DNA of 64,000 nucleotides from Octopus sinensis. Lineage: Eukaryota. Below the pieces are notes generated by a model. It did not search any database, was not told where the DNA came from, and was given only the letters and a program-made list of their open reading frames with translations. Position numbers and translations under genes: made by a program. The stretch spans positions 117,056,001 to 117,120,000 of the forward strand of contig NC_042999.1 in the NCBI RefSeq assembly GCF_006345805.1. The letters are read 5' to 3'. Below, piece after piece: positions 9,455-38,226 of this stretch (positions are counted from its first letter, which is position 1; every line of letters begins with the position of its first letter).

Positions 9455-9860
9455 CAAATTTCATCTCATACTCTTTTACTTGTTTCAGTCATTTGACTGC
9501 AGCCATGCTGGAGCACTGCCTTGAAGGGTTTTAGTTGAAGAAATTGATCCCAGGACTTATTTCTTAAGCCTAGTACTTATCCTATCAGTCATCTTTGCCA
9601 AACTGCTAAGTTACAAGGATGTAAACACACCAACACTAGTTGTCAAGCATTAATTGGGGGGGGGGGGAGAGACAAACACAAAGACACACATAGATATATA
9701 CATTTATGAATGTGTGTGTATGTATATACACACATTTATGTGTCTACCAATGCTTTGGTCGGTCCGAGGCAATAGTAGTAAACACTTGTCCATGATGTCA
9801 TACAGTGGGACTGAACCTGGAATTGTGTGGTTGGAAAGCAAGTTTCTTACCACACAGTCA
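9455..9860 (-). mobile_element. tRNA/CORE-type SINE, family 2
   Basis: Minus-strand head (gtgtggtaagaaacttgctttccaaccac...ggttcagtccca), ggacaagtgtttactac core-like block, tail ...gcatggctgcagtcaaatgactgaaacaagtaaaagag; further copies at 29625-29935, 30910-31140, 39215-39380, 51770-52135, 53800-54215, 54525-54885, 57285-57690 and 59200-59540. Confidence 0.85.
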
Positions 9861-10184
9861 TGCCTGCATCTATGGAACTACTTAATAGAACAGAGGTCTA
9901 TAAAGTGTCAGTTGCCAGGTCTTAGATGTATGATGGAAGGATGCAAACAGACAGCTGAGTGGATAGGGGTCACAACAGTCTACAAACCCATGGATAGGAA
10001 ACTTGTATTTTGCTGGTTTTACTGTAACAGGTCTATAGTTAAAACAAGTTAATTTGAAATGCTCCAGTCCAGATATTTATAAGTCATACCATAAGGTAGC
10101 ACTATGAAACAAGCAGTTTGTTAGCTTCTAGAGTTAGTAAAGACTAGTGTGCAATAAATATATTTACTCCAGTGATTCATATGA

Positions 10185-10395
10185 TCATCGTTTAACGTCT
10201 GCTTTCCATGCTAGCATGGGTTAGACGATGTGACTGAGGACTGGTAAACCAGATGGCTGCACCAGGCTCCATCTTGATCTGGCAGAGTTTCTACAGCTGG
10301 ATGCCCTTCCTAATGCCAACTACTCCTAGAGTGTAGTGGGTGCTTTTACGTGCCACCGGCACAAAGGCCAGTCAGGCGGTATTGGCAATGGCCAC
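10185..10395 (-). mobile_element. RTE-family 3' end fragment
   Basis: gtgccggtggcacgtaaaagcaccc...ggcattaggaagggcatccagctgtag...catgctagcatggaaagcagacgttaaacgatg on the minus strand. Confidence 0.8.
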
Positions 10396-10639
10396 GAAAA
10401 AATCTTTTTTTTTATTTTTATCCCAAATTTTTACAGATTTATCTGTCCACTCTGCTGGGTTGTTGGTGTAAGAAAGGCCATCCAGCAGCAAAAACCACGT
10501 CAAAAGAAATACAGAAGTCTGGTGCAGGCTTCTGTCAAACCATCCAACTTATGCCAGAATGGAAGGCAGATATTAAATGATGATCTCTGGGTTTGCAAGA
10601 AACAATGTGGAAAAACAAACAAAAATTACATGAATAAAT

Positions 10640-10970
10640 AAACTGGCACATTCTGTCAGATACGACGACGAAGGTTCCAGTTGATCCCATCAATGGAAGA
10701 GCCTGCTCATGAAATTAACATGCAAGTGGCTGAGCACTCCACAGACATGTATACCCTTAACATAGTTCCCAGGGAGATTCAGTATGACACAGAATGTGAT
10801 AAGGCTGTCCCTTTGAAATACAGGTACAGCTAAGTTTTGCCAGCTGAGTGGACTGGAGCAACATGAAATAAAGTGTCTTGCTCAAGGACACACCATACTG
10901 CCAGGAATTGAACTTACGTTCTTGTGATTGTGAGCTGAATAGCCTAACCACTAAGCCATGTGCCTTCACG
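10640..10970 (-). mobile_element. tRNA/CORE-type SINE, family 3
   Basis: Minus strand: tggcttagtggttagg (A box), gttcaattcc (B box), tgtccttgagcaagacactt (CORE-like). Confidence 0.8.
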
Positions 10971-13391: not shown

Positions 13392-13627
13392 TTTATTTCT
13401 TTATTGCCCACAAGGAGCTAAACATAGAGGGGCCAAACAAGGACAGACAAAGGGATTAAGTCAATTACATCGACCCCAGTGCATAACTCGTACTTAATTT
13501 ATCGACCCCTAAAGGATGAAAGGCAAAGTCGACCTTGGCAGAATTTGAACTCAGAACGTAACGGCAGACGAAATACCGCTAAGCATTTCGCCCGGTGTGC
13601 TAACGTTTCTGTCAGCTCGCCACCTTT
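13392..13627 (-). mobile_element. Young family-1 SINE with alternative (Tx1-like) 3' tail
   Basis: CpG-rich body; tail ...gcccctctatgtttagctccttgtgggcaataaagaaat; 13-bp TSD aataaa(c/t)accaca at 13379-13391 and 13628-13640. Confidence 0.9.
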
Positions 13628-13739
13628 AATAAATACCACACTACTAAATTAAAACCTCTACCTTTATAACGTACATTAACACCCATCATTGCAAAACATT
13701 TTTTTCACATTTGAAACTAAAAATGAAATTAACTTAATC

Positions 13740-16390: not shown

Positions 16391-17145
16391 CCTTTCTTCT
16401 ATAGGCACATGGCATAAATTTTTTTAGGGAGGGAATAATTCGATCATATCGACCTCAGGGTGTAACTGGTACTTATTTTATCGACTCTGAAAGGATGAAA
16501 GGCAAAGTCGACCTCGGTGGAATTTTGCCCAGCATGCTAATAATTCTGCCAGCTTGCGACCTTAATAATAATAATCCTTTCTACTAAAGGCACAAGGCCT
16601 GAAATTTGGGAGGAGGGGACTAGTCGATTACATTGACCCTAGAACTTCGTCTAGCATAAGCATTTTATTCAGCATGCTAACAATTCTTATTTCTTTATTG
16701 CCCACAAGGGGCTAAGCATAGAGCGGACAAACAAGGATAGACAAAGGGATTAAGTCGATTACATTGACCCCAGTGCATAACTGGTACTTAATTTATCGAC
16801 CTCAAAAGGATGAAAGGCAAAGCTGACCTCGGCGGAATTTGAACTCAGAATGTATTGGCAGACAAAATACCGCTAAGCATTTCGCCCAGCATGCTAACGA
16901 TTCTGCCAGCTCATCACTTTCTTAATAATAATATTTCAAATTTTTACCACAAGGGCAGCTTGGAGGAAGTAGGGAAGAGTCGATTACATCAACCCCTGTA
17001 TTCAACTGATACTTATTTTATCGACCCCTAAAGGATGAAAGGTAAAGTTGACCTCGGCAGAATTTGAACTCAGAACGTAAAGACAGATGAAATACTGCTA
17101 AGCATTTTATCGAGCATGCTAACAATTCTGCCAGCTCACCACCTT
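16390..17145 (-). mobile_element. Block of four minus-strand family-1 SINEs, including a Tx1-tail copy at ~16688-16918
   Basis: Head-to-tail copies separated by (taa)n. Confidence 0.85.
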
Positions 17146-22879: not shown

Positions 22880-24300
22880 ATTATAGCAAGCCTAGGTATT
22901 GATTTGTTTTTCTTTTAAATGGTCTATCAGTAACACAAGGACAAAGTAACAACTTTTTATGACTGTATAATGAGTATATTACCATTAGAAGTAATAGGTT
23001 AACTGTCAGGTTAAGTTGGTTCCATTCAAATCTCTGGGATGACATTAAGAGTAAAGTGATCAATATCACCCAGGAGTGAGCTGAGAGAAAGCTATTCCTG
23101 AAGGTTGGGCAGAGCTGACAAACATCTGCATCATGTCCATCATATAGTACTCTCTGAGCCCATCACGGCTTGCTCTTGTTTTTGCCTGTTCAGATTGAAG
23201 CATCTTTTATTTCACTGCTTGTAAAAAGAGCAAATTCTACTGGCCAGGAACACCATCTGCTACAAACACCATTGCAGACATCTCAATGGAATGCAGCAGG
23301 ATGGTAGAATTTAGCTTCTGCTTATTTTGTTGAGGATGTTTGGGAGCACAATCAACATCATAAATGGGAGGGAGCTTAAGGATGGTTGGGTTGAGAGGTC
23401 TGAGATCACCTATGTATGCTCTCAAAAAATTTAACAGCTTTAGTGGAAAGTCAGTTGAGTGCCAGAGAAAAGGTAAAATATAGGAAATAAGACAGAGACC
23501 ATGCTACACTGCATTACTATAGCAAAGGCAATGCACTTCAGAAGACTGACCATGTTGTTTGCAAGAAGAGACTCAATAGATCACAGTGTGGTAGCTGCTC
23601 TATTAAGCAAGTTACTCAGAATGGCACATCAAACTGTATGCAAGTGATCCTTTTTATCTTGATCTCTCCAAATAAGGTGAGTAAGGCAGTACCAAAATGT
23701 CATCCCAGAATGGCAATTCTATCAGCATCTTGAGGTTGAGACACTTTTGGAAACCAACTCAGATCCAGCTACGGTTTCTTCTTGGAGGCATTCAGCCATT
23801 ATCAATTGGAGGTAGCCTGGCATCATGCTCTTTTATCAAGTGAATATGCAAACCATTACTCTGACTCCATGATTCCTATTGTATTGGATGGAACAGCTAT
23901 AACCAAACGATGTTGCTGGCATTACTGTCGGTCAGCTGGAGCATCAGCATTGAATGGCATAGACTATGTTGAAACCCTGACAACTTGGAGCCTCACATAT
24001 GTAGATGCACTAGTAGTATACAACTAACATATTTCATGATGGCTTAATCACAGCTCACATACCCTGTCAGTGGGTGAACAATACAGCACTTTGTGAATTC
24101 TACTTTGCATTGAGAGGAAGAACCCCTACATTGATGGATCAAAAAGTAATATAACTGTGCAAGCTTGGTTACTACAAGCCAGATATCACGGTAGTAAATT
24201 TTCTGATATTCTCTAGGCAGATACACAGATCACTGTTCAGAAAAGATCAATGAGCACAGAAGGCTCAGTGTGCACCATAGCTGATGCAAGGACATGCTGA
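22880..24300 (-). mobile_element. Possible highly decayed I/Nimb-type LINE (RT C-terminus to RNase H)
   Basis: Only short motifs (SIESLLA, ESWSQSNGL, ALFTSSEI, YDGHDADVC..CP) in colinear order; weak. Confidence 0.35.
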
Positions 24301-30905: not shown

Positions 30906-31484
30906 TCATCAGCACTGTTACAGGGACGTAAACACACCAACACTGGTTACCAAGCAGTGATGGGGGACAAACATAGACACAACACACACAAAGTGCTTCT
31001 TTCAGTTTCTCTCAACCAAATCCACTTATAAGGTTTTGGTCGGCCTGAGGCTATAGTAGAAGACACTTGCCCAAAGTGCCATGCAGTGGGACTGAACCCA
31101 GAACCATGTGGTTGGGAAGCAAGCTACTTACCACACAGCCACAGAAGAAAGAACTTACAAGTAAGAGAAGGTTTCAATAAAGAAATTAGTTGTAAGAAAC
31201 AGGAACTACAACTTATTTAACACAAAATCAATCCTGATTTGTCAAATGTATGACATGAACCAGTTTCTCTCTTCCTTTTCTTTTTCTCCCTAGAGACAAC
31301 ACAATGTATCAAGAACTACATTATCCAATGTATTTTTCCATTTTTAAAACAGCACATTGAAATTTTAGGAAGATTTGATATCTATTTCTAGCAAAACTTA
31401 TAGATTTCCTTCTTTAGTTCATAGGACCAACAGTACATGAAGAACATTTTAAAGACTAGTATGTTATTCTGCATTCATTCTGTT

Positions 31485-32611
31485 ATACAAGACATAAGAC
31501 AAAGCTAAGGAAAATGCTACAGACACAGTAAAAACAGAGAAAGTGGTTCTTCTACCCACTTATTTGGGAAGAAGGACTTCAAGGATTAGGGTGGAGGGAA
31601 TTCCACTGGAAATTGATGTGGATTGGATCTTGGCAGCTGTTCTGGGAAGTGAGGAAGAAGTAGCTGTCCTCCAAGCCACAAAGAAGGAAGGCTCGGTTTG
31701 GAAAGGAAAAACAATGGATCTGATTGTACAGGCTGCAGTGGAGACACTCGAAAATTTAGTGGAGATAGTATCAATCAGAGATATGGTGTTGAAAGTGTGG
31801 GTGGAGGGCAGGACTCCTCACTGCTTTAAACGTGGCCCAAAAGGCCACATTAGAGCACACTGCCCTCTGCAAATGTAGGCTCCAGAAAGGATGGACAAGA
31901 GGCTGGAAAAGAAGCAAGAGGAGGAAAAGGAAAGAAAGGAAGAATGGAAAATTGCAGAAGGAAGACGGAAAAAAGGTGAAACGAACAGTGTTATGTGGAA
32001 CCCCAAACCTCACCCACCTCACCATTACTCTCTGAGACCCACCCCCTCCCTACAGATACCGAACCCACCCATCCCCCTCCTATACAATCCAAAAAAAAAA
32101 AGAAATGCAATCACAACAAAGTACAAAGTATTCCCTTCCCTGTGAAGTAAATTATGTTTGTATACTGACAGACAACGAGAATAAGGAACTAATTTGGAAA
32201 GTAACAGGTTGGAAGATGGCAAAAATGGTATATACAGAAGGATATAACACAATAGGGTGGCACATGGGTGTGCTGCTTTCAGAAAAGCAGATAGAAGAGG
32301 TGAAAAATTACAAAATAAGTTTTAAGTTTTGGAAGATCAATACAGACATTAAAAGGATACCGGACAACATAAGGTATGAGAAACTATTGGTGAAATTTGG
32401 TGTTGATGTGGTAAAAAGACTCCCAAGGAAGTAAGTGATGCTGCTTGAGGTGGGGAAAGCAGCACATTTCCATTTTCTCAATCTCGTTATTCATTCATAC
32501 TATCATATTTATAACTTTATTTGAATTTTATTTTAATTATTTTGTGTTATATGTCCCCACATGTGTTTGTGTTGTCCCCTCTTTGTTAGGCCCCTTGTGG
32601 GAAATAAAGAA
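31485..32611 (+). mobile_element. ORF1(gag)-only Tx1/L1-type retroelement, copy A (5' truncated)
   Basis: VVLLPTYLGRRTSRIRVEGIP...SVWKGKT...LKVWVEGRTPHCFKRGPKGHIRAHCP (RRM-like region plus CCHC knuckle, one C>R), K/E-rich and P-rich linker, unknown C-terminal domain (32150-32434), then 3' UTR ending gccccttgtgggaaataaagaa; no RT or EN. Confidence 0.8.
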
Positions 32612-32633
32612 ACAATGGTTTCTTCAATGTTTG

Positions 32634-34274
32634 TATATTTATACTTTGCTTTTTGTACTGGTGTTTTATTCTTTTGAACATGTTGTGCTGCTTTGCTGCA
32701 GTTTGTTTGTGGTTTGTTTGTGCTTTCTCTTCTCGTGAAAGGAGAAGTAGCTTAGTAAAAACATATCTGTAGAAGATTATGGCTTCTCAGACATATTGTC
32801 GCTGGAAGAGGAATTGTTGGAGGCGGTTTGGTAGATGGACAATCAATTGAAGGGGAAGAGGAATTTTGCCAATGTGGCAAAATGCCAGAAGGAAATGGAT
32901 ATCGGAAAATTTGGAAGGTATAAAGATTTATTAAGTTGGGATGGTTTTGAGGTGAAGCTGTCCCCCACCACAAGTGACACATAATAACAATAGGAAACAA
33001 TAACGTACTGAACCTTTTCAATAAGTAAAGGAAAAATTGACATTGTGACTACAGACCAGGTAGAAAAGGCTATGAGACCGATATGGAGCGATATTGTGTA
33101 CCTCGCAAGAGGTTTGATGTTTGGAGTAGTGGTGGTGAGGTCCAAGGACATAGCAACAGCAAGGAAACAAGCAGCGACATCCATCAAGAGTGAAGAAGTG
33201 GTGTTTCTGCCCACTTACCGAGGATTAAGAGCAACAAGAATCAGTGTAGAAGGAATTCCACCAGCGAGACAAATGTGGCCTGGGTAGCAAACACTGTCTT
33301 TCTTGGAAACGAGGACAACATAGTGGTTATCCAGGCCAGAAAAAAAAGAAAGCATGATATGGAAGGGACAAACACTGAACCTGATTCTTCAAGGATCAAC
33401 CAAGACTCTGGAAAATATCAGAGTCAATAATTATGGATGATGTGATAATGACGGTCCAGGTGGAGGGCAGAGTCCCCAGCTGCTTTAAATGTGACCCAAA
33501 GGACCACATTAGACCAAAAAAGCAGAGAAGTGACTGAAGAATATGGAGGAGCAAAAGGAAGAGAGGTTGGAGAGTTCCAGAAAAGAGGACGAAGTAGTAG
33601 CAATGAAGGACAAGTGGGAAAAAGTCACTGAAAGAAAGAGAAAGCAAGTGTTTTGAACTCTAAACCTCAACCCACACCCTCTCAGACCCACCCTCCCCCC
33701 ACAGACACCAAGCCTACTCATTCCTCTCCGACACAAAAACAAAAGAAAAAGAAAACAAGTACACACAAAACCCCTCAAACTCCCTCCAGCCAGACAGAAA
33801 AGAAAAAATGTATTGTAATAATGTATGATGATTCAAATGAGGAATTATGTAAGGAGGTAATGACATGGGAAGAGTGTAAAAAATGGAAACAGAGGGGTAT
33901 GACAATGTTAAGAGGTGGAACCAATGTGTGGTAACCACAGAGGAACAAAAGGTGAGGTTAACAAGGCATGAAAGTGGATATGATTGGTGGGAAGTGGAAC
34001 TTGATTGGAACAAACTACCAGACCTTTTAACATAAGAAAAATTGTTGGAAAAGCATGGTGTAGACAATTTTGAAGGTTCAAGGTATAAGAGATGTTAGAA
34101 GGCAGAAATGGAGTTGCTCAGAGGTGGGGCTGAGTAGTTTCATTGCATTTTCTCATTTTCATTATCATCATGTTCTCATATGTTGATTTGATTTTTTGAC
34201 CTTTTCTTTCTTTTTTTGTTTTGTGCCCCCATGTATTGTCCCGGCTGTGTTAGCCCCTTGTGTGCAATAAAGAA
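32634..34274 (+). mobile_element. ORF1(gag)-only Tx1/L1-type retroelement, copy B (full length, 22/23-bp TSD)
   Basis: T-rich 5' UTR with hairpin cttctc-gtgaaag-gagaag (32729-32747); broken ORF ~32770-34098 with KRNFANVAK, VFLPTYRGLRATRISVEGIPP, VQVEGRVPSCFKCDPKDHIR and the same C-terminal domain as copy A; flanked by acaatggtttcttcaatgtttg (32612-32633) and acaatggtttctttcaaggtttg (34275-34297). Confidence 0.82.
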
Positions 34275-36675
34275 ACAATGGTTTCTTTCAAGGTTTGAAG
34301 AGAAGTCTTTAACTTAGTTTTTAATGAAATGACAATATAGAAAACATAAATGAAAACAAGAGTATTTTGTCTTTGGACGAATCCGATACTGATATTAGTG
34401 AATATTCGTTGGACGAGGAAGATATTGAGAACAAAAGTGATAAAAATGGTATGACAACATTGTCAAAGACTACAACACCAATTACTATTCTTGATTTTAC
34501 AGAAAACACTGGTCCACAACACAATTTACCTCTTGATGCTCAACCATTGGACTACTTATTTTTATTTTTACTAGGAAGTTTTTTTTGAAAATGTTATGGA
34601 GGAAACAAACAACTATGCACAATGTATAATTTCTATTCATGGAAGAAACAATCCACTATGTCAGCCAATTTATACTGTGTAAATGAGAGCGTTTTTCACA
34701 ATCAATATTATGTTTGGTGTTAAACAGCTTCCTCAACCGTGGAACTACTGGAGTCCTGATAGATATCTCAAGTATAAGACAAGGTATTCGAAAATATCTC
34801 AGTATTTACATTTAATTGATTCTGTTAATGCCCCCAGCAAAAACGATCCACACTACAATCCCTTGTACAAAGTATGTCCTGTAATTGATTTACTCCTTAA
34901 TAGTTATAAAACTGTGTATGTACCTGAGAAAAATCTCAGTGTAGATGAAGCCATGATAGTCTATAAGGGCAGAGTACATTTTTGGCAGTACATGCCTGCC
35001 AAAGCCACTAAATGAGGGATCAAGGTATGGGAGGTTTGTGAATCAGACACTGGATATTGTATAAACTTTGATGTTTACACAGGTAAAAAATATAATGGGA
35101 ACAGACCATATGGATAGGGACATGATGTAGTACGTTCTCTTACTGAACCATTTCACCATCAGCACTGACACTGCTAGTTTGAATGTTATTTTTTCTTCAC
35201 TGGCTTTGGCAGAAAATCTTGCCCATGTAAGTACTTACATGTGCAGTACTGTTATGGGCAGCTGTAAAGGTTTACCCCGTGAAATGAAAACAAAATTTAT
35301 AAAAAAGAGGGGTCATTTTACAAATGCAAAAGGAAAATTTATTAGTTACTGCTTTCAAACACAAAAGACAGATTTTATTTCTGTCTACTAATGAACAACT
35401 TGGTATTGGTGCTGAGGAGAAATCCCTAGTGAATAGTTATAACAAATATATGGGTGGGGTTAATAAATCTGACCAATATTGAGCACATTACCCTGTTGGT
35501 CAACCTGGGAAGAAATCATGGAGGTATATTTTATAGTTTTTTTAGTTAATTTAATTACAGTTAATTCATATATTGTATATGTAAAAAGCCACAAGGTACC
35601 TCCACCACCAAAGGACTATGACCATTTGAAATTTCGGTTGACATTGATTCTCAGTTATGTGAGGGCTTTTCTTCTAGAAAGCACACAACTGGGAGAAAAG
35701 CAAAATTAACTGAAGTGGGTGTCAACAGAGAAAATATTGACTTTCATAACATCAAAAAGATAAATGGTAAAGAAACGGTTTGCAGACTGTGTTCGCTGCT
35801 AAAAAGAAAAACTGCAAAAGGGTATCAGATCAAGACTTCGTATATGTGTTTCTTTTGCAAAGTGCTTTTGTGTAAAAGGTGCTTGGGCAGTTTCATGACA
35901 GAAATATGTCATAACTATATTATTTTATCATATATTCCTTTTCATTTTATTATAAATAATATGTGAAAGTGAGAAATACATATAAATTTTCAATATGTTA
36001 CACACCTGTATTCACCTTTATCTCACCTGTTAATGAGCTTTTTTTATTAGATGCATTCTGTTATGTAAATGAATTCATTAAATTGTATAAGAGTACATAG
36101 CCAATGGTGTATTGACTAGTAAAAGAGTTTTGTACTTCATTTTCAATGAAATACAGAGAAAGAATAAAATCTTGTACCAGTTACACCGGTATTTTAATTA
36201 ATTCAAATTTAAAAAAGCTCATTAACAGGTGAGACAAAGGTGGATACAGGTGTGTAACATACTGAAAATTAATATGTATTTCTCACTTTCACATATTATC
36301 TTGAAAAATGTAAAATTGTTTCCATTATATTTTTTAAATGTGTAAACATCAAATAATTTTAGTAACAAATGAAACAGGTAAGATATATTAAGAAAATGAA
36401 TTTTAGTGTTTATTCCTAATGTTATTGTTTCTACACCTGTAAATTAAATTTACCTGCCCATAGAAGTCAAATTTAATTAGAAAGATCAGCTAAAATTATG
36501 TAACTATAAACCACTGGCATATAAGCACCCATTTACAAAATTTCAAATCTGTATGTAGAAAATTAACAAGTTACAAGCAAATATTGTGGAAACCCCACTT
36601 AAACCTGAATAAATCAAACAATGTGAACAGATAAGCCTTACATTTGACAAATTCATCTGAACACTAAAGGGTTAA
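34275..36675 (+). mobile_element. Dead piggyBac (PGBD4-like) transposon; left TIR missing, right TIR plus TTAA present
   Basis: Probable ATG at 34278; acidic N-terminus; FTENTGP..LPLDAQPLDY; LYKVCPVIDLL; NLSVDEAMIVYKGR; YNKYMGGVNKSDQ (D>N); C-terminal CRLC...MCFFCKVLLCKRC; terminus ...tctgaacactaaagggTTAA. Confidence 0.93.
35957..36300. repeat. ~90-bp inverted repeat (foldback) in the piggyBac 3' region
   Basis: ataatatgtgaaagtgagaaatac...ttaatgagctttttt (35957-36045) vs aaaaaagctcattaac...tctcactttcacatattat (36210-36299). Confidence 0.9.
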
Positions 36676-37987: not shown

Positions 37988-38226
37988 AATTTCTTTATTG
38001 CCCACAAGGGGCTAAACATAGAGGGGACAAACACGGACAGACAAAGGGATTTAGTTGATTACATCGACCCCAGTGCGTAACTGGTACTTAATTTATCAAC
38101 CCCAAAAGGATGAAAGGCAAAGTCGACCTTGGCGGAATTTGAACTTAGAATGTAACAGTAGACGAAATACTGCTAAGCATTTCACATGGCCTGCTAATGT
38201 TTCTGCCAGCTCACAGTCTTTCACAG
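37988..38226 (-). mobile_element. Young family-1 SINE with Tx1-like 3' tail
   Basis: Exact 15-bp TSD aatgtacagcattct at 37973-37987 and 38227-38241; tail ttgtcccctctatgtttagccccttgtgggcaataaagaaa. Confidence 0.92.

Follow-up and report, generated by a model that had tools for sequence, protein, structure and literature searches.

Two ORF1-only, LINE-type retroelements of Octopus sinensis appear to share one target duplication at the probable start codon of a decayed piggyBac transposase

Several non-autonomous long interspersed nuclear elements (LINEs), namely HAL1 (L1 clade), HeT-A (Jockey clade) and Ag-Sponge (CR1 clade), are 'bipartite' elements in which the first open reading frame (ORF1) is present (Kojima 2018, PMC5786205). 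Tx1L, a Tx1-clade LINE of Xenopus laevis, is known for inserting at one sequence of Tx1D (PMC1919474, PMC1950540), which is a non-autonomous piggyBac family according to Kojima 2015 (PMC4494074), and LINEs of the stringent type share their 3' tail with partner short interspersed nuclear elements (SINEs; Ohshima and Okada; Kajikawa and Okada 2002, as cited in PMC4494074 and PMC9115989). Here we analyse a 64-kb stretch of Octopus sinensis DNA (contig NC_042999.1; hereafter the window), in which two decayed retroelements, A and B, lie in tandem in front of a decayed piggyBac transposase ORF. Both appear to belong to a family of octopus non-autonomous LINE-type retroelements of ~1.6 kb carrying an ORF1/gag-like gene only (RNA recognition motif (RRM)-like domains, a CCHC knuckle and a C-terminal block), and B is flanked by a 22/23-bp repeat that also adjoins the 3' end of A. 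Protein-index searches retrieved four octopus proteins, for one of which (P0011) the DNA locus was used for comparison (L001, 20 kb, O. sinensis CM016880.1).

Between 31.4 and 36.0 kb of the window the order on the + strand is element A, T1, element B, T2 and the decayed piggyBac ORF, T1 and T2 being the left and right copies of the duplicated 22/23-mer (T). T1 (ACAATGGTTTCTTCAATGTTTG) occupies positions 32612-32633 and T2 (ACAATGGTTTCTTTCAAGGTTTG) positions 34275-34297; 21 of the 23 alignment columns are identical, the remainder being one gap and one mismatch. Further matches to T2 with at most three mismatches were found neither in the window nor in 100 shuffles. The 3' ends of A and B remain homologous across the repeat, so T1 doubles as the 3' flank of A. 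Both copies coincide with element ends that were defined independently, the 3' end by the point where similarity to SINE tails and the L001 element stops, and the 5' end by alignment of the 5' untranslated regions (UTRs). The target duplication around B that had been proposed in a preliminary description of this DNA is thus recovered at independently set element ends. Since the element tail, which is common to tRNA-like SINEs, stops at AATAAAGAAA(T), T is a genuine target duplication and not a part of the element. Its length of 22-23 bp lies at the long end of the duplication range among elements with the same tail, and would fit duplication by the same kind of machinery. As a separate observation, T2 (at 34282-34288) and T1 contain TTTCTTT, which is complementary to AAAGAAA, the core of the tail; the chance of finding it in a 23-mer is ~0.007.

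Element B (32634-34274, + strand) is 1641 bp long. It comprises a 5' UTR (32634-32778), aligning with the 5' start of the L001 element, the remnant of a start codon at 32779, an RNP1-like sequence YLARGLMFGVVVV (33099-33137), a CCHC remnant (33481-33513), a C-terminal block ending near 34065 and a tail that ends ...CCCCTTGTGTGCAATAAAGAA. Its reading frames contain 21-32 stops each, none staying open for more than 100 codons; B is a dead copy. Its coding similarity is confined to ORF1-like proteins, including an uncharacterised protein of O. bimaculoides, P0161 (48% identity over 238 aligned residues with tblastn; 58% identity over 62% of the query with BLASTP), and the O. sinensis gene model P0011 (LOC118767527), matched at the protein level. 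A representative protein library contains 173 relatives, mostly short, of which the longer ones carry a CCHC zinc knuckle only. Pfam scans revealed no reverse transcriptase (RT) or endonuclease (EN) in B, A, the L001 element or the ten longest of the 173 relatives, which argues that the family is non-autonomous and agrees with the earlier statement that B encodes ORF1 only.

The nature of this ORF1 could be described in part. Translations of A and B gave no Pfam hits of any kind; a zf-CCHC match was found in relatives, and an RNP1-like motif, RG..(F/Y)G.V.V, is present in the family ORF. The AlphaFold model of P0011 contains a confident beta-alpha-beta domain (pLDDT, the predicted local distance difference test score, >90 across residues 20-120), after which comes the knuckle. 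A Foldseek comparison of this model with the PDB returned nothing at E<=0.001, RRMs occurring only among weak ferredoxin-like matches, and a PDB profile search returned CCHC knuckles only. The 'RRM-like plus CCHC' part of the preliminary description seems reasonable, while its attribution to the Tx1/L1 type goes beyond a knuckle and a fold with no significant structural match.

The point of comparison is the element in L001 (9459-11055, ~1597 bp), which consists of a T-rich 5' UTR, an ORF (9575-10729) and a 3' region of ~330 nt. Its ORF is open for 384 codons, annotated solely as the 242-aa 'uncharacterized protein LOC118767527', and the element may be a recently active copy. The 5' UTR, the start-codon region and the tail of B all align with it. 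Despite an ORF1 identity of 36%, the two elements (1641 vs ~1597 bp) have homologous 5' UTRs, ORFs and tails, and this near-equal length with alignable ends shows that B is full length and that the ORF1-only layout is the family norm. Such an architecture is therefore characteristic of the family and did not arise by deletion in a single copy. B had been called full-length at the outset, which holds for its extent; its coding sequence is heavily decayed.

Element A (31465-32611, + strand), a decayed ORF1-only retroelement of another subfamily, is truncated at its 5' end. Nucleotide homology to B begins at 31541, and at the protein level A matches the L001 ORF and P0015 from 31465 onwards, so that A is without roughly the first 700 nt; it has kept a CCHC remnant (31822-31863), the C-terminal block (32105-32434) and the tail, ending ...CCCCTTGTGGGAAATAAAGAA. 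Over the RRM-CCHC region that they have in common, the identity of A is 60% with P0014 of O. bimaculoides, 56.5% with P0013, 51% with the L001 ORF and 46% with B. The sequences point to A and B being separate insertions of members of different subfamilies at the same nucleotide. Hallmarks of LINE-type target-primed reverse transcription are present among the three elements: target duplications around B (21/23) and around the L001 relative (19-21 bp), and 5' truncation with a retained tail in A. About 280 nt upstream of A, at 31176-31187, there is also an exact copy of the 12-nt tail motif CAATAAAGAAAT (chance expectation ~0.06 per window), which may be a severely truncated insertion.

With HAL1, HeT-A and Ag-Sponge the octopus family has in common an ORF1/gag-like gene and LINE 5' and 3' ends, with no RT or EN; its copies show target duplications and 5' truncation, and the layout is kept across the divergent B, A and L001 elements. 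It differs from these elements in its tail, a specific sequence of ~60 nt ending in AATAAAGAAA(T) instead of poly(A), which it has in common with tRNA-like SINEs, and in its host, a cephalopod; moreover, it is known without its parental autonomous LINE or clade. We would place the octopus family with the ORF1-present bipartite non-autonomous LINEs, an assignment that extends neither to the LINE clade nor to site specificity.

The tail links these elements to other residents of the genome. The L001 element ends in a version of the terminal 45-60 nt of A and B (...TTGTCCCCTCT.TGTTAGCCCCTTGTGGGCAATAAAGAAA), and so do three tRNA-like SINEs in the window, all on the minus strand, and two SINEs in L001. 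In the L001 element and all five SINE copies the similarity ends at AATAAAGAAA(T), and the sequence beyond is different each time. Among the window SINEs, the copy at 37990-38213 (tail CCCCTTGTGGGCAATAAAGAAAT) is flanked by a duplication of 15 bp, AGAATGCTGTACATT, and the copy at 13393-13632 by one of 13 bp, TGTGGTRTTTATT; at 16687-16940 the duplication is ambiguous and a 5'-truncated SINE head follows directly. The L001 element is inserted in a SINE head, with a duplication of 19-21 bp, CAGAAAYGTTAGCACGCC(G). All these target duplications (19-21, 15 and 13 bp) are unrelated to T. A tail of ~45-60 nt common to a tRNA-like SINE and a LINE-derived element is what stringent-type LINE/SINE pairs display, and implies one tail-recognising reverse transcriptase; the octopus pair differs in being known without its partner LINE, and the prediction of a small hairpin within the tail, based on 4 pairs with one compensatory change, is weakly supported. 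Neither the window nor L001 contains an autonomous LINE that has this ORF1 and this tail. When metagenomes were scanned for the tail motif, three chance matches in unrelated DNA were obtained, and look-ups of two window ORFs for other copies gave no match.

Elements sharing a site also occur away from A and B. At L001 17990-18480 a 15-mer present three times (atattttatctgatt, atattttatcttaat, atatttcatctggtt) brackets and separates two tandem SINEs with different tail types; here, too, one target duplication is common to two elements, and the site is unrelated. In the window, the regions 62.9-64.0 kb and 16.4-17.2 kb contain head-to-tail arrays of tRNA-like SINEs, in which every head directly follows an (ATT)n-type tail belonging to the copy before it; in several copies the 5' truncation falls at one common head position. 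Head-to-tail SINE arrays of this kind are common in this genome.

The ORF behind T2 (34298-35966, + strand) encodes a decayed, PGBD4-like piggyBac transposase with stops and frameshifts, spread over all three frames (Pfam DDE_Tnp_1_7, 1.1e-53). Its best relative is XP_014770740 of O. bimaculoides (P0001, PGBD4-like; 73-77% identity), to which firm homology extends from 34331 to ~35920, with a C-terminal Cys-rich finger reaching ~35918. This homology starts at residue 16/17 of P0001 (DDIENINENKS), 34 nt downstream of T2. The 15 preceding residues (MASASSDSDFEGFTL) need ~45 nt, which places the start codon near 34286, inside T2. As had been noted, the right-hand copy carries an ATG (34278) that reads MVSFKV*. 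By eye, T2 and the next bases give M-V-S and then, in the +1 frame, S-R-F-E-E-K-S-L-T, which resembles MAS....SDFEGFTLD of P0001; the SDFEGF motif is also found in the piggyBac proteins P0003 and P0008. A frameshift-aware alignment of the first 16 residues of P0001 with 34260-34330 scored 14, a value reached in 89 of 300 shuffles and hence not significant. The proposal that B was inserted at the piggyBac start codon thus holds with respect to position, at the 5' end of the ORF as judged from the N-terminus of P0001, and is weaker with respect to sequence, the match between the 23-mer and that N-terminus not being significant. T2, and its ATG at 34278, probably mark the start codon by their position; the resemblance of the sequence is suggestive.

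The limits of the piggyBac transposon itself are less clear. No pair of piggyBac terminal inverted repeats, which would be flanked by TTAA, was found around 31.2-37.5 kb, a weak negative given that no family consensus was at hand. Of the candidate terminal repeats, CCCTAGAG occurs once, at chance level, and TTAACAGGTGAGA.. only in a local inverted duplication; upstream of A neither a terminal repeat nor a piggyBac 5' region was identified, so that the separation of the transposase from its promoter, as first proposed, is conjectural. On the 3' side of the ORF, at 36211-36353, lies an inverted copy of two non-adjacent pieces of this piggyBac (35940-36044 and 35067-35103; the arms measure 105 nt, at 90%, and 37 nt, at 92%), encoding FDVYTFKKYNGN on the minus strand. 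This is a foldback rearrangement or the remnant of an internally deleted inverted copy.

We consider it reasonably probable that A and B came to share a site through ordinary re-use of an insertion site beside an older relative, for which no recognition of piggyBac would be needed. A would have inserted first, next to the piggyBac start, and B would then have landed at the tail of A. The tail of the B RNA could have paired with the nicked tail DNA, and a staggered second nick, on the top strand ~23 nt downstream, would have duplicated T. The duplication may measure 22-23 bp, or up to ~30 bp if it includes the last tail bases, which would be indistinguishable from B's own tail. T would then merely happen to be the first bases of the piggyBac transposase ORF, now a pseudogene. 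The single site of A and B would thus be explained if insertion sites are re-used or if existing tails attract new insertions, possibly a generic habit of octopus SINE and LINE elements, and the family would be mobilised in trans by a LINE recognising the shared ~60-nt tail.

The sequence of events could be read in other ways, two of which dispense with a second insertion into T or with a target duplication altogether. If the 23-mer belonged to the elements, as an extended 3' end or a 3'-transduced flank, there would be no target duplication and B would merely abut A. The unbroken homology of the two 3' ends through the 23-mer can be so understood, and AATAAA is present 3-8 nt upstream, from where a transcript cleaved ~20 nt downstream would include the 23-mer; the lack of a significant match between T2 and the piggyBac N-terminus also agrees. 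However, the preliminary description had itself raised this possibility, and on checking, the L001 element and the five SINE tails proved to end at AATAAAGAAA(T), each followed by a different sequence. Moreover, A and B come from different subfamilies and their other relative is without T, the 5' end of B would have to fall exactly at the last base of A without any duplication, and the N-terminus of P0001 needs ~45 nt upstream of 34331, which reach into T2. We regard this account as highly improbable. Even harder to sustain is an ancient tandem duplication of a unit made up of an element and the 23-mer, followed by divergence. It would account for two homologous units in direct tandem, each ending in T, but B is full length and A has lost its 5' part, elements at other loci resemble A more closely than B does, and T1 and T2 are 91% identical when the adjoining 3' regions of the two elements show 73.5% identity (at least 21 of 23 matches at 70% identity: p ~0.016). 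The affinities of A, together with the better preservation of T than of the 3' regions, make an old tandem duplication unlikely. Both of these candidates were rejected on the grounds just given.

The remaining alternatives accept two insertions into T and ascribe them to the target. The octopus locus resembles that of Tx1L in that a piggyBac-type transposon contains a LINE-type element and, in tandem with it at one site, a relative, with a duplication of ~23 bp, which is also the length for Tx1L. It was originally suggested that B is a piggyBac-specific 'hyperparasite'; more fully, the A and B lineages might have been aimed by the endonuclease of a partner LINE at the 23-mer (ACAATGGYTTCT..) starting a piggyBac family, in which case a second insertion, in tandem, into the target as regenerated by the first is to be expected. 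That members of divergent subfamilies were inserted independently at the same nucleotide, with identical junctions, speaks for this, as do the location of T at the expected piggyBac start codon and the parallel of a piggyBac target with Tx1L/Tx1D (PMC4494074, PMC1919474). The flanks of the few other readable copies do not bear it out: a related same-tail element (L001) sits in a SINE head and same-tail SINEs occupy unrelated sites, which argues against targeting of piggyBac since the machinery that reads the tail of a non-autonomous element sets its target. In this very small sample the copies do not share one defined target sequence, T being common to A and B, and the L001 element and the SINEs being elsewhere. 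In addition, A is closer to a copy outside piggyBac (51%) than to B (46%), sharing of a site is also seen at an unrelated target (L001 17990-18480), and the sequence examined holds no other piggyBac copy and no other T. Tx1L differs further in being autonomous, with an endonuclease shown to be sequence specific; the octopus element has no ORF2, its relatives and the same-tail SINEs lie at unrelated targets, and a single occupied piggyBac is known. Recognition of the piggyBac sequence thus seems quite unlikely to us. A local endonuclease hot spot, hit twice independently with no role for the tail of A and no specific targeting of piggyBac, is also unlikely, if a little less so. Three of the five readable targets start with similar motifs (AGAATGC, CAGAAAY and ACAATGG, the ACAATG of T resembling AGAATG and CAGAAA), but the motif is short, the sample is five sites, and in a genome of gigabase size such a motif is expected hundreds of thousands of times, which makes a double hit by preference alone improbable.

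Several points weigh against ordinary re-use of the site. The readable copies are few and come from two loci (64 kb and 20 kb), and the single comparison copy, the L001 element, belongs to another subfamily. The coincidence of two divergent subfamilies at exactly one nucleotide, with a duplication close to the 23 bp of Tx1L, is also expected of a site-specific element, and Tx1D, into which Tx1L inserts, has been assigned to piggyBac (PMC4494074). As to the history of the insertion of A, the best-scoring candidate for a third copy of T upstream of A falls inside the shuffle range. Finally, the re-use mechanism is itself inferred.

These data document an octopus family of ORF1-only non-autonomous LINE derivatives, of which a narrow literature search found no published description. 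Its tail is common to an abundant SINE, which is of use in annotating repeats and in tracing the LINE behind the octopus SINE expansion. The two clean examples of a pair of retroelements sharing one target duplication bear on the formation of head-to-tail SINE/LINE arrays. It is quite unlikely that two divergent, trans-mobilised ORF1-only subfamilies were both targeted to one 23-bp sequence at an octopus piggyBac start codon; were this so, the elements would be non-autonomous, Tx1L-like sequence-specific parasites of a DNA transposon, implying a site-specific partner LINE still to be discovered in cephalopods, and would provide a second independent case of the Tx1L/Tx1D type and the first with a non-autonomous element.

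Two other features were recorded in the sequences analysed. The minus strand of the window contains, at 24022-24254 and in a non-rDNA context, part of a eukaryotic large-subunit rRNA (Rfam RF02543, 111 bits, model positions 2411-2988), and an ORF at 327-1208 of L001 (293 aa) encodes a mariner-type transposase (Pfam Transposase_1, 6.6e-25).

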